From: Macrostomum lignano
Taxonomy: Eukaryota
DNA length: 64,000 bases
Direction of reading: 5' to 3'
NCBI GenBank assembly: GCA_002269645.1
Contig: NIVC01001670.1
Location: 1 to 64,000 of the forward strand
Of the stretch, positions 14,208 to 32,074 are shown piece after piece; the first letter of the stretch is position 1; every line of letters begins with the position of its first letter. The translations under genes were made by a program, and so were the position numbers. Below the pieces are notes generated by a model, which searched no databases, was not told where the DNA came from, and worked only from the letters and a program-made list of their open reading frames with translations.

Positions 14208-17200
14208 ATGTCGGAGGACCGAATCACTGAGATGGAGGTGACTGCCGGCTGCCAGCCTGCCGTCTCCCGTAGAGTCCGAGCGTAGAGTACGGCTGCTTAA
14301 ATTTTCACTGGCACATTCTCATCTCCTACTCATAGTAGCCAGTGCTCACAGAGCTATTTGCCATAGCCAGCCGAGGGGAGGGACAGGGAGGGAGGGAGGA
14401 AACTGTGGGGGGATGTTGGAAAGAATGGGGAGCCTAAATTCTGGAGGATTTCACGGGAGGGATCCGCGGGGCGATATGCGTGCGCGGCTGCCTTCGGACC
14501 TGAGGCCCGAAATGTGACGAAGGCTCCGCGCTTCCCCTCGTTGCTCTTCCCCCGCCCTCTCCACAAGGTGGGGATCCAGAGGAAGGAGGTTAAAGAGGAA
14601 GTCGTCGATTGGGCAGCGGCGGCTTAGCGAAGTGGATTAGGTGCGACCGCCGGGGAGACCGGGGCCCCGGCCTGCTGGCCCGGGGATTGGCCGCCGCGCT
14701 CGCTCTAAAAACAGCAGCACTGCGGGATCGCGGTGTTCCTCCGCCTCCCATTCTTTGCCCCCCTCTCTCCCTCTCTGTCTTGGCCTCCAAATGCCCCTAT
14801 AGAAATCCCGTCGGACTGCACAGTTCAGTCTGGGAAAGACAGAGGCGCAGACGGGAAAAATCCCCTACGCAAGCGGCGGCCGCAGCTGCGTCATCAGAAC
14901 CGAGCTTCATCAGCGTCAGCCCCGATCTCCCCTGCCCCGCGCAGGCTGGAGGCAGGTCAGCAGCCGGGGATGCAGCAGCAGCAGCTTCATCTTAACCAGA
15001 TGCCGGCGCACAAGGCTGACGGCGCTGCTGCTGACACCGGCGCCGCAGCCAAGCACCGCTGCCGGCACGCCAGAGTAAGAGTAGCAGCCCTGACTCTCCC
15101 GCCAGAGTAAGAGTAGCAGCCCCGACTCTCCCGCCAGAGTAAGAGTAGCAGCCCTGACTCTCCCGCCAGAGTAAGAGTAGCAGCCCTGACTCTCCCGCCA
15201 GAGTAAGAGTAGCAGCCCTGACTCTCCCGCCAGAGTAAGAGTAGCAGCCCTGACTCTCCCGCCAGAGTAAGAGTAGCAGCCCCGACTCTCCCGCCAGAGT
15301 AAGAGTAGCACCCCTGACCCCTGACCCGTGATTGGTTTGTTGTCGGGCGAGAAATGTGCAGCAATTCTGGACTCGAATCTCTACTCGGACTGGGGAGAAT
15401 GTGGCTTGTAGAAAAATTCTAATAGAGCGCCTGCGACATTTGCCTTCTTTCTATCACCCTGCAGCTTGTCTGTCTGACTGCCCTCTTGCCCGCTTCTGTT
15501 GCTGCTCGTCCCCCCCCCCCCGGGTAGCTCCTCCAAGCCGTCACTCTTGCCAGGCTCCATTCCTGGCTAAATTACCTCCTGTTTGTCCAAGTGACAGCTC
15601 AGCAAACTGAATGGCTGGTGGGGGCGGCGTTCAATGATAGCCCCGAATGCCAAAACTGACAGAGACAGACAGACAGACAGACAGACAGACAGACAGACAG
15701 ACAGACAGACAGACAGACAGACAGACAGACAGACAGACAGACAGACAGACAGACAGACAGACAGACAGACAGACAGACAGACAGACAGACAGACAGACAG
15801 ACAGACAAACAGACAGACAGACAGACAGACAGACAGACAGACAGACAGACAGACAGACAGACAGACAGACAGACAGACAGACAGACAGACAGACAGACAG
15901 ACAGACAGACAGACAGACAGACAGACAGACAGACAGACAGACAGACAGACAGACACACAGACAGACAGACAGACAGACAGACAGACAGACAGACAGACAG
16001 ACAGACAGACAGACAGACAGACAGACAGACAGACAGACAGACAGACAGACAGACAGACAGACAGACAGACAGACAGATAGATTCCCCGGTTAGCAAATCG
16101 AGGCTAATAATTCGAGCTAGGCCTAGCAAAGCGCTGGCAGCATATTTCTTCCTTCACTTTTCTCTTCAATTCTCATTGCCGGGTCGTGGCCGATTGTCGC
16201 CCAGACATGGGGAAGGCGGGGGGCTGCAGCCAGTTTTCAGGAACCCAAACACACCCTGGTGAAACTTGAAGAGCAGCGCAAACAAGTGAATTTCAGTTTG
16301 CGCCGCTCTTCAAGTTTCACGCACCAGCATGAGAGGCTCGCTAATAAAATTTAAATGCATGCAAAGTGAGAAGTGCAGGGTCTCTTAGATGTCTCCGTGG
16401 ATACCCAGGCTAAGCTGAGTAGCCAGAATTTGCTCAGCATGCATGCGCAGACCTGCTTCTAACCTGAGAGCTTTTGCTCACAATAAACCGATACAAGTTT
16501 TGGGGCTTATCGCGACAACAACTGACCTTTAGTGACCGCTAGCGACCCTCATCAAAGCTTGACCTCAACTGACCTCCCACCCCGCCACCAAAGGACGCCG
16601 GCTACCACGCCGTGGACACGGACGACGACTGCCAGTCCAACGGCAGCGGCGAGTTCAACTCCACCGAGTTCCTCAACGCCCGTGACGAGCCGGAGGACCC
16701 CCAGCTGCTCCAGCAGCAGCCGCAGCAGCTGCACTACCGGCGTCAGCCAGCGCCGGCGCAGGCGGCCTGTCGCGGACTGCGGAACCGCGGCCTCCTCCGC
16801 GCTGCCTCCTCGTCGGCGGCCACCGCCGAGGCCGCACTGTCCGACCGCGACGCCGTGGTGACGACATCCTTGTCGGAGCGGGCCGGGCCGTCCGGACTCT
16901 GTGCTGCCACCATCGGCACCGTGGACCCCGGGCCGGTGTCTCTGGACCCCACGCAGCGGCTCATCGACGCGCTAGAGACTCTGCGGGACTCCATCAACGA
17001 CAGCACCAGCGTGGCGCTGCAGCAGAGCCGCGTGCGCAACCGGCGCCGGGGCACCTCAGCCGGCCAGGTCAACTACAAGGGCGGCGGCCTCAAGAACGAC
17101 GAGCGCTGCCGCATCCGGGCTGAGAAGGTGTGGAGGGGGTCGGGACCTGGATATTCTGAATCACTTCCTCTCCTGCTCACCTCCTCTCCTGCTCACCTCC

Positions 17201-32074: not shown

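Follow-up and report, generated by a model that had tools for sequence, protein, structure and literature searches.

To our knowledge, all characterised pLGICs (ion channels that are pentameric and gated by a ligand) carry a ligand-binding domain that is either extracellular or periplasmic. In the canonical receptors (GABA-A, GlyR, nAChR, and 5-HT3), a cleavable signal peptide comes together with a C-x13-C disulfide, glycosylation of the ligand-binding domain, a long basic cytosolic M3-M4 loop, and a C-terminal tail of about 2 aa; the Cys-less family described below appears to be the opposite on each of these points. ELIC and GLIC, which are exported by means of signal peptides, have a periplasmic ligand domain.

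Metazoan "Cys-less Pro-loop receptors" have already been published (Jaiteh, Taly & Henin 2016, PMC4795631), and a schistosome clade of Cys-less LGICs (Smp_336620/334630/135040) is described by Johnson et al. (2023, PMC9874803). The latter paper calls the ligand domain extracellular. In the text covered, neither paper takes up orientation, the tail behind M4, or the presence of signal peptides; the terms "signal peptide" and "C-terminal" have no occurrences in PMC4795631. Literature searches (inverted or cytosolic pLGICs, signal peptides of Cys-less receptors, and the Smp identifiers) found no paper addressing topology. The Cys-less clade itself is thus already known, and the novelty here lies in the family-wide reading of its topology.

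Gene structure and membership of the Cys-less clade

The window (the whole stretch of DNA that was analysed, 64,000 nucleotides of contig NIVC01001670.1) contains an intact, alternatively spliced Macrostomum lignano gene, whose encoded subunit belongs to the "Cys-less" (Pro-loop) clade of spiralian pLGICs. All of its features lie on the + strand, and exon borders are GT-AG and phase 0 throughout. A first-pass annotation had seen no candidate first exon; a tblastn search in which P0001, an annotated protein of M. lignano (97% identity), served as query placed exon 1 (3520..3624) about 13 kb upstream of the first exon noted then. It begins with ATG, encodes 35 basic and hydrophilic residues (MNFSRSMLAYGKTPKRSGSGYGRPKRQLPTSTSYY), and is bounded by a GT donor at 3625; an in-frame stop lies upstream at 3259, with no ATG between this stop and 3520, so that the reading frame of exon 1 is closed at its 5′ end. 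A promoter-like CCAAT-box repeat (60 bp, 2.5 copies; 3315..3464) is found just 5′ of the start codon. The refutation that had been anticipated, a real 5′ exon encoding a signal peptide, did not materialise: the exon is real, yet it encodes no signal peptide.

Exon 2 (16594..17127) contributes 178 aa of the N-terminal extension; these are hydrophilic, most are predicted to be disordered, and they include a conserved helix spanning aa 154-186, a basic cluster (RNRRRGTS), and the sequons NGS, NST, and NDS. The ligand-binding beta-sandwich begins in exon 3 (18651..18779) and continues in exon 4 (20882..21082), which ends within the Pro-loop; exon 5 (22229..22486) encodes the remainder of the domain, the pre-M1 sequence RCRAARR, and the first half of M1. 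Two tandem alternatives follow: exon 6a (24835..24990; AFKF type), encoding the end of M1, the M1-M2 loop with the -2′ Glu, M2 with the 9′ Leu, and the M2-M3 loop, and exon 6b (25030..25185; TFKY type), which has 2′ Arg rather than Gln and -1′ Tyr rather than Ala and is the version present in P0001. Lineus isoforms alternate the same two exon types. Exon 7 (27990..28310) encodes M3, a 60-aa M3-M4 loop, and M4, and the loop contains the two elements first reported for it, an NQT sequon (28098-28106) and a Cys pair, C-x10-C (28161-28193). The polybasic post-M4 motif kept across the family is encoded by exon 8 (30898..30945), and the conserved end of the tail by exon 9 (31982..32074), which holds RRTS (32039-32050), an internal donor after TSTVL, and the stop codon. 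An alternative 3′ exon (33129..33275; NKIQFYQMVESHGRG...) shares homology with the tail that isoform X7 has in Lineus, and the AATAAA closest to it lies at 33396. The introns of the gene are full of tandem repeats.

The predicted protein of 614 aa has a 213-aa N-terminal extension and about 400 residues before M1. Pfam PF02931 (Neur_chan_LBD) matches at E=8.7e-8 (32.3 bits versus a cutoff of 26); PF02932 falls under its cutoff (19.8 versus 28.1 bits). Sequence matches in the PDB are GABA-A gamma2 and ELIC (~1e-15). The AF2 model has pLDDT >85 across the ligand-binding and transmembrane domains, including high-pLDDT strands at 214-396, and its best Foldseek matches are GABA-A and GlyR (1e-19). 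Four hydrophobic segments (400-422, 430-450, 458-485, and 546-568) are also AF2 helices.

The Pro-loop motif FPLD occupies residues 318-321, in a segment spanning the junction of exons 4 and 5 (21044-21082 plus 22229-22234); F318, P319, and D321 are invariant in a 54-sequence alignment, as is L439, the 9′ Leu gate of M2, and the -2′ position of M2 is E428. In the HMMER alignment to GABA-A gamma2 the Pro-loop segment stands opposite CQLQLHNFPMDEHSC, and the two Cys-loop cysteines have E311 and L325 as their counterparts, bearing out the earlier reading that these are replaced (E-x13-L); C-x13-C is therefore absent. The pattern E..P..L occurs in essentially all of the 120+ relatives. C387 and C392, both pre-M1, are the sole cysteines of the ligand domain, and there is no second Cys-loop.

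With its beta-sandwich ligand-binding domain, M1-M4, Pro-loop, and 9′ Leu, the gene product is a pLGIC by the features tested; pentameric assembly and ligand-gated conductance are putative properties. It shares its fold, Pro-loop, pre-M1 Arg, 9′ Leu, and M2-M3 SLPK with GABA-A, GlyR, nAChR, and 5-HT3 receptors, but would stand outside the Cys-loop receptors sensu stricto, as C-x13-C, a signal peptide, a glycosylated ligand-binding domain, and a short C-terminus all appear to be lacking. ELIC and GLIC resemble it in having no Cys-loop cysteines, a short M3-M4 loop, a -2′ Glu, and similarity at ~1e-14, and differ in having neither a long N-extension nor a polybasic post-M4 helix. Cation selectivity of the pore is probable, judging from ELIC, GLIC, and the schistosome members, which share the -2′ Glu.

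The product shows the marks of the Cys-less clade: a polar residue in place of Cys1, a hydrophobic residue in place of Cys2, and an acidic -1′/-2′. It has the FPxD loop without cysteines, the missing second Cys-loop, and the -2′ Glu of the published, mainly spiralian clade, from which it shows no difference in kind and of which it is a member. Orthologues at 55-75% identity occur in annelids, nemerteans, flukes, and tapeworms, and identity to clade members from these four groups is 49-81%. The best 120 matches come from flatworms, annelids, nemerteans, rotifers, molluscs, and brachiopods, or are Logan/JGI sequences without taxonomy, with the call of closest relatives resting on similarity ranking rather than phylogeny; among these 120, every row with a complete Pro-loop has E..P..L or a close variant. 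The clade comprises at least 224 clusters (50% identity, E<=1e-30) from flatworms, annelids, nemerteans, molluscs, rotifers, and brachiopods. Two gabrg-like genes of planarians, gabrg1 and gabrg2, fall within it.

Signals, charges, and sequons across the family

The first-pass annotation had seen nothing resembling a signal peptide at the N-terminus, and this stands with exon 1 included; the only hydrophobic 19-mers in the 614-aa protein are M1-M4. Relatives that start with Met and carry 40 aa or more ahead of the ligand-binding domain number 148, many of them gene predictions whose N-termini are possibly wrong; at most 3 of the 148 have a real hydrophobic N-terminal stretch, and their overall median H10 is 1.04, versus 2.52 in GABA-A gamma controls, 75% of which reach >=2.0. 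The control set is one vertebrate subfamily, and simple heuristics underlie both the signal-peptide and the charge tests. A signal peptide is likewise missing from two transcript contigs whose ORFs are closed at the 5′ end. Signal-like N-termini in P0008, P0015, P0026, and P0114/115 were attributed to over-extended 5′ ends, truncated models, or poly-Ala stretches; the hydrophobic N-terminal segment of P0195, a divergent member, is the only one that looks real.

In the M. lignano protein, the flanks of the helices carry net charges of +4, +1, and +5 on the side of the ligand domain and -1, 0, and -1 on the far side (totals +10 versus -2). The family median for K+R is 10 on the ligand-domain side versus 3 on the far side, with 91 of 94 members biased in this way, and the representative set behaves alike (8 versus 2; 87 of 89 in the same direction); the GABA-A gamma controls are opposite (3 versus 11). 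Directly after M4 comes the very basic tail of 46 aa first reported, with 16 K+R and 6 D+E. Its motif, A[CS][KR]RRRxMxxKD[KR][DE]Y, is near-universal in the family, in which the median tail is 47 aa long (2 aa in the controls), and AF2 models M4 and the tail as a single helix (residues 530-613). The element RR[TQ]ST is kept from flatworm to annelid, the tail encoded by exon 9 matches annelid and nemertean tails, and the tail is heavily alternatively spliced both in Lineus and in the M. lignano gene.

In most family members the M3-M4 loop has 11-22 aa; the M1-M2 loop of the gene product has 7 aa. Long flatworm M3-M4 loops contain 68 N-x-S/T motifs read forward versus 34 read in reverse, and GABA-A gamma cytosolic loops 30 versus 26. 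Four orthogroups with long loops contain 7 conserved sequon columns versus 1 for the reverse motif, with loops just 31-61% identical and a varying middle sequon residue. These statistics are modest and phylogenetically non-independent, and the representative set alone gives 27 versus 17 (p=0.17). A composition-preserving shuffle test returned an O/E of 2.08 for the M3-M4 loops but also 2.26 for the GABA-A gamma cytosolic loop, because one conserved NAT was counted in each orthologue; forward/reverse counts and position-specific conservation were therefore used instead.

Ligand-binding domains of the family have 0.19 sequons per subunit (none in 72 of 88) versus 2.7 in the controls, and no sequon occurs in this domain of the gene product (aa 214-399). 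Family-wide, tails have 46 forward versus 50 reverse sequons. The N-extension of the gene product has 4 sequons versus 1.4 expected, and NGS, NST, and NDS had been raised earlier as a counterpoint to an inverted topology; the sequons are indeed present, but the counterpoint is weak, as their positions are not conserved in orthologues and N-extensions across the family have 111 forward versus 111 reverse.

The loop Cys pair is kept as C-x7-10-C in the M. lignano/trematode orthogroup, but is not diagnostic of a disulfide since GABA-A gamma cytosolic loops are also Cys-rich. M3 and M4, for which higher hydrophobicity is expected if they flank a long translocated loop, gave 1.89 versus 1.79 (M3, not significant) and 2.12 versus 2.06 (M4, p=0.05) in long-loop versus other members. 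Ten family members, of which eight have a long N-extension and two a long C-terminal region, were scanned with Pfam for compartment-diagnostic domains; this returned none but DUF4706, in one C-terminal region. The co-occurrence check proposed in the first-pass annotation yielded a missing signal and a basic tail family-wide, with sequons where the M3-M4 loop is long.

Orientation in the membrane

Translocated domains of >100 aa require Sec61 and a signal (PMC13220792), and among multipass proteins with a cytosolic N-terminus 89% have an even number of TMDs and are made of TMD pairs (Wu & Hegde 2026, PMC13220792). The gene product has the features given in that paper for the N-cyt/C-cyt even-TMD class: no signal, an even number of TMDs (four), short loops within pairs (for M3-M4, in most family members), and flanks in keeping with the positive-inside rule. 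The lack of a signal before an N-terminal domain of about 400 residues, together with strongly positive flanks on the ligand side, makes N-in/C-in insertion the most likely outcome. The subunit is therefore probably oriented N-in/C-in with a cytosolic ligand-binding domain; the earlier suggestion that this domain and the C-tail face the cytosol is supported, as the signal, charge, tail, loop, and sequon tests all agree. We also favour, on balance, the broader proposal that inside-out insertion is general to an ancient branch of animal pLGICs as a whole, with the ligand-binding domain as a cytosolic sensor, a polybasic helix replacing the intracellular domain, and the M3-M4 loop as a glycosylated ectodomain. 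The missing Cys-loop cysteines were discarded as a sign of cytosolic location, since the periplasmic ELIC and GLIC are also without them.

Under the N-in/C-in orientation, the protein would insert as two helical hairpins, M1-M2 and M3-M4, leaving the N-extension, ligand-binding domain, M2-M3 loop, and basic tail on the cytosolic side and exposing to the outside or lumen both the short loop between M1 and M2 and the M3-M4 loop, the latter apparently glycosylated where long. A putative intracellular ligand would gate the channel from its cytosolic face, and the alternatively spliced post-M4 tail may take over the regulatory role of the canonical M3-M4 intracellular domain. Insect odorant receptors compared with GPCRs, and the iGluR pore compared with the K+ channel pore, are precedents for flipped topology; they embody the same idea of an inverted conserved fold and show that inversion is evolutionarily possible, although the folds are unrelated.

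In the canonical orientation the ligand-binding domain would instead be extracellular. The N-domain would then cross the membrane with no cleavable signal to direct it, by way of M1 as a reverse signal-anchor or of an internal signal that escaped recognition, and the basic tail would lie on the outer face, bound, for example, to acidic surfaces of the receptor or to matrix. Such is the established orientation of the characterised pLGICs, and neuregulin-1 is an example of a long N-terminal ectodomain that has no cleavable signal; the pre-M1 arginines are found in canonical receptors too, and the N-extension bears NGS, NST, and NDS. PMC9874803 places planarian homologues in mechanosensory neurons and reports seizure-like movement after RNAi, which fits a neurotransmitter receptor. 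This arrangement is nevertheless unlikely: about 400 residues, including a folded beta-sandwich, must cross the membrane with no signal sequence, flanks charged +4 and +5 would be exoplasmic, the charge bias of the family is the mirror image of the controls, and conserved sequons are found in the M3-M4 loop, while the ligand-binding domains are almost free of them and those of the N-extension are unconserved.

Import into an organelle outside the ER route, such as the mitochondrial inner membrane, with the basic N-terminus as presequence, is very improbable. A presequence-like character (basic, Ser/Thr/Arg-rich, and acid-free for ~35 aa) is seen in exon 1 (MNFSRSMLAYGKTPKRSGSGYGRPKRQLPTSTSYY) and at the N-terminus from Owenia, but N-termini differ among orthologues and paralogues (a paralogue begins MSSVQELVNLKKKAKRRRR, and Lineus begins MLFSRIALTNEF with acidic residues soon after), and the conserved M3-M4 N-x-S/T sequons indicate the secretory pathway. 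It is scarcely credible that an annotation artefact or a decaying gene (exons missed, the model mis-assembled, or the locus a pseudogene) accounts for these features: the deposited model P0001 ends differently at its 3′ side and in another frame, several of the UniRef models for M. lignano are either chimeric or carry frameshifts, and tandem repeats crowd the introns, but every exon is open, with phase 0 and GT-AG borders, functional residues are invariant at 55-75% identity to orthologues from other phyla, the exon 9 tail is matched in annelids and nemerteans, and the features recur in >200 clusters, including RefSeq and transcript-derived sequences.

If the N-in/C-in orientation is correct, the Cys-less receptors would be the first pLGICs gated from the cell interior. 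The signal sensed could be a cytosolic metabolite, a second messenger, an ion, or a protein partner; assays with extracellular agonists would not be expected to activate these channels, and de-orphanisation would shift to inside-out patches and intracellular ligands. The inversion would also bear on anthelmintic work, given that the proposal of schistosome and tapeworm members as drug targets assumes a binding site outside the cell (PMC9874803). The family would, in addition, offer a natural test case for the way in which a multi-domain channel fold copes with being inverted, and for the rules that govern the biogenesis of membrane proteins.

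Gene structure and family membership

The channel gene of Macrostomum lignano was first annotated at 16594-32074 (+). Coding exons in this interval number eight, one of which comes in two tandem versions, and every one is phase 0 and bordered by AG/GT: A (16594-17127), B (18651-18779), C (20882-21082), D (22229-22486), E1 or E2 (24835-24990 or 25030-25185; 156 bp each), F (27990-28310), G (30898-30945), and H (31982-32074, stop codon included). Exon A has no methionine, so an additional upstream exon is required. The first-pass annotation had reported no candidate, but tblastn with the annotated M. 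lignano protein P0001 located exon 1 at 3520-3624 (+), 13 kb upstream of exon A, encoding MNFSRSMLAYGKTPKRSGSGYGRPKRQLPTSTSYY and directly followed by GTAAGT; an in-frame stop at 3259 closes its reading frame, and the stretch from there to the exon start has no ATG. A 60-bp unit repeated 2.5 times (3315-3464), each copy carrying GCCAATCAG (a CCAAT box), ends about 55 bp 5' of the start codon and looks like a promoter. The introns (4726-32850) are dense with long tandem arrays: (AGAC)n at 15663-16081, 18906-19800, and 25414-26142, a 52-bp unit in 41 copies (28337-30496), a 21-bp unit in 51 copies (21128-22198), and others with periods of 14, 16, 20, 22, and 24 bp. Just downstream lies a 319-aa ORF (35863-36819, +) with a match to Pfam Galactosyl_T (PF01762, E=1.4e-41), apparently a beta-1,3-galactosyltransferase-like gene.

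The channel translation matches Pfam Neur_chan_LBD (E=8.7e-8) and solved GABA-A gamma2 and ELIC chains (~1e-15). A search of 5.8 billion proteins identified P0001 ('BOX15_Mlig010629g1'; 97% identity) and recovered 55-75% identical orthologues from annelids (Owenia, Capitella), the nemertean Lineus, flukes, and tapeworms, with remoter relatives coming from rotifers, molluscs, and one brachiopod. An AlphaFold2 model built on an alignment of 54 relatives has pLDDT >85 for the beta-sandwich and four helices, and Foldseek matched it to GABA-A beta3 and glycine receptors (~1e-19). In the pore, the 9' Leu is invariant and the -2' position is Glu, a residue read by Johnson et al. (PMC9874803) as a hint of cation selectivity, on the analogy of ELIC/GLIC.

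The Cys-loop cysteines are indeed replaced, with E311 and L325 standing in (HMMER alignment over gamma2 CQLQLHNFPMDEHSC); the E-to-L segment of the Pro-loop is split across the exon C/D junction. Of the 120 best hits, nearly all that are complete in the relevant regions have E..P..L at the Pro-loop together with the basic motif A[CS][KR]RRRxMxxKD[KR][DE]Y directly after M4. Scanned exhaustively with HMMER, 1.84 billion cluster representatives yielded a family of 224 clusters (E<=1e-30); in the 150 that were listed, which extend to 33% identity, both motifs dominate. Judged by these alignments, the Cys-less, basic-tail pattern is a family property and not particular to the Macrostomum gene.

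N-terminus, flanking charges, and predicted orientation

The exon 1 peptide is hydrophilic and basic, and across all 614 aa of the protein, 19-residue windows are hydrophobic only at M1 (400-422), M2 (430-450), M3 (458-485), and M4 (546-568), which bears out the earlier view that nothing at the N-terminus resembles a signal peptide. That view had named a 5' exon encoding a signal peptide as evidence against an inverted topology; the exon is real, and it encodes no signal peptide. We scored 148 relatives, many of them gene predictions, that have a Met start and at least 40 residues (median 130) before the ligand-binding domain, using as a simple heuristic the highest Kyte-Doolittle mean reached by any 10-mer within residues 1-70. 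The median was 1.04, and seven reached 2.0 or more; by the identical metric, the median for 57 Met-started vertebrate GABA-A gamma subunits was 2.52, and 75% of them scored at least 2.0. Four of the seven segments run into beta-strand 1, P0008 is a doubtful 5' over-extension, and P0114 is poly-Ala, leaving P0195 as the sole one resembling a real hydrophobic N-terminal segment. No hydrophobic N-terminus was found in two transcript-like contigs (L001 and L002) whose ORFs are closed upstream of the start.

Charge was counted on the ligand-domain side (15 aa before M1, the M2-M3 loop, and tail residues 1-15) and on the far side (the M1-M2 loop and M3-M4 flanks). Net charges in the channel protein are +4 (pre-M1), +1 (M2-M3), and +5 (post-M4) on the former and -1, 0, and -1 on the latter. 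Median K+R is 10 versus 3 in 94 complete relatives (ligand-domain side higher in 91) and 8 versus 2 in 89 representatives (higher in 87), the mirror image of the canonical bias seen in 110 controls from one vertebrate subfamily, GABA-A gamma (3 versus 11; higher in two).

Translocated domains longer than ~100 aa require Sec61, and N-terminal ones also a signal sequence, while Oxa1-type insertases handle flanks below ~50 aa; multipass proteins with a cytosolic N-terminus are 89% even-TMD, with closely spaced TMD pairs and positive-inside flanks (Wu and Hegde 2026; PMC13220792). With no signal sequence, four TMDs, an M1-M2 loop of 7 aa, and an M3-M4 loop typically of 11-22 aa, the family's predicted architecture fits this class exactly, and from this fit we infer N-in/C-in insertion. 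The protein would insert as two hairpins, placing the N-terminal extension, ligand-binding domain, M2-M3 loop, and tail in the cytosol. A cytosolic ligand would then gate the channel; this follows solely from the inferred orientation, and the sequence points to no candidate for such a ligand.

We regard this inverted orientation, with the ligand-binding domain and tail cytosolic, as probable. Long ectodomains without a signal do exist, neuregulin-1 being an example. Given the mirrored charges and the hydrophilic N-termini, we consider a canonical orientation reached by unconventional translocation unlikely. Targeting to a membrane other than the ER is much less probable still, and an artefact, set against the breadth of the family, is the least probable explanation.

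Some divergent family members stand apart. P0195 has a strongly hydrophobic N-terminal LLSTFTLFVLLLLII at residues ~28-44 and a tail that is less basic. This protein may carry an N-terminal anchor and may, exceptionally, have kept the canonical orientation, in which case it would offer a useful natural comparison. P0152, P0156, P0157, and P0171 form a separate subgroup with acidic, not basic, post-M4 tails; no signal peptide was found in these four, and their M3-M4 loops (37-64 aa) contain sequons or Thr-rich/poly-Thr stretches.

The M3-M4 loop, tail, and alternative splicing

The 60-aa M3-M4 loop contains the NQT sequon (28098-28106) and Cys pair (C-x10-C, 28161-28193) originally noted, and the sequons NGS, NST, and NDS are present in the N-terminal extension. 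Loop length is just 11-22 aa in annelids, nemerteans, rotifers, and molluscs and 100-165 aa in parasitic flatworms, whose loops have abundant N-x-S/T. A shuffle test on these loops (68 sequons versus 32.8 expected, O/E 2.08) was dropped as evidence since a control cytosolic loop was also enriched (O/E 2.26), because one conserved NAT was counted in every orthologue. Forward N-x-S/T was instead compared with reversed [ST]-x-N, of identical composition. Long flatworm loops gave 68 forward and 34 reverse (naive p ~0.001) and gamma control loops 30 and 26; among representatives, counts were 111 and 111 in N-terminal extensions, 46 and 50 in tails, 81 and 108 in ligand-binding domains, and 27 and 17 in M3-M4 loops of at least 25 aa (p=0.17), all modest statistics from phylogenetically non-independent sequences. 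In four flatworm orthogroups (loops 31-61% identical), seven forward sequon columns versus one reverse column are kept in at least 60% of sequences. The N and S/T are kept while the middle residue varies, as in a tapeworm column (NAS, NAS, NVS, NTS, NSS) and a fluke column (NIT, NTS, NIS, NTS, NVT, NVT, NQT, NQT). Macrostomum VNQT resembles the fluke VNQTF/DNETF site, and the Cys pair is kept in that orthogroup as C-x7-C (GCSRxNRMAC). Family ligand-binding domains average 0.19 sequons per subunit (none in 72 of 88); gamma subunits have 2.7 each.

The basic 46-residue tail described earlier is present (16 K+R, 6 D+E), and median tail length is 47 aa in the family versus 2 aa in controls. AlphaFold2 predicts M4 and tail as a single continuous helix (residues 530-613, pLDDT 85-94) and, within an N-terminal extension that is otherwise disordered, a second helix spanning 154-186. 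The tail end RR[TQ]ST-x-L-x-H is kept across the flatworm, annelids, and nemertean; its RRxS/T can be interpreted as a protein-kinase-A-type consensus, and the juxtamembrane ACRRRR (Cys plus polybasic run) is reminiscent of the context in which cytosolic palmitoylation occurs.

For the Lineus orthologue, RefSeq isoforms differ in their post-M4 tails, with at least five alternatives, and in an N-extension cassette. In canonical receptors such splicing touches the cytosolic M3-M4 domain, whereas in Lineus and Macrostomum it affects the post-M4 tail; a Macrostomum alternative 3' exon (33129-33275, NKIQFYQMVESHGRG...) is homologous to the Lineus isoform X7 tail. Within exon H an internal donor follows TSTVL; the deposited P0001 model omits this exon and translates the downstream one in a different frame. 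The first ~300 bp past the exon H stop contain no AATAAA, the nearest being at 33396. The tandem exons E1 and E2 encode alternative versions (AFKF and TFKY types) of the M1 end, M2, and M2-M3 loop, differing at pore positions -1' (A/Y), 2' (Q/R), 8', 13', and 16'. Lineus longissimus RefSeq isoforms alternate the same two types (X1 versus X2/X6), so mutually exclusive pore-helix splicing appears to predate the flatworm-nemertean split.

Relation to published work

The Macrostomum gene is a new member of the Cys-less clade described by Jaiteh et al. (2016; PMC4795631), a paper in which 'signal peptide' and 'C-terminal' do not occur and neither the post-M4 tail nor orientation is discussed. Johnson et al. 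(2023; PMC9874803) treat schistosome members, note mechanosensory-neuron expression and RNAi phenotypes for planarian homologues, and term the ligand domain extracellular; no discussion of signal peptides, the post-M4 tail, or orientation was found in the text through its Methods. A full-text literature search turned up no paper describing an inverted or cytosol-facing pLGIC. The clade itself is already published; what is new here is the reading of its topology.
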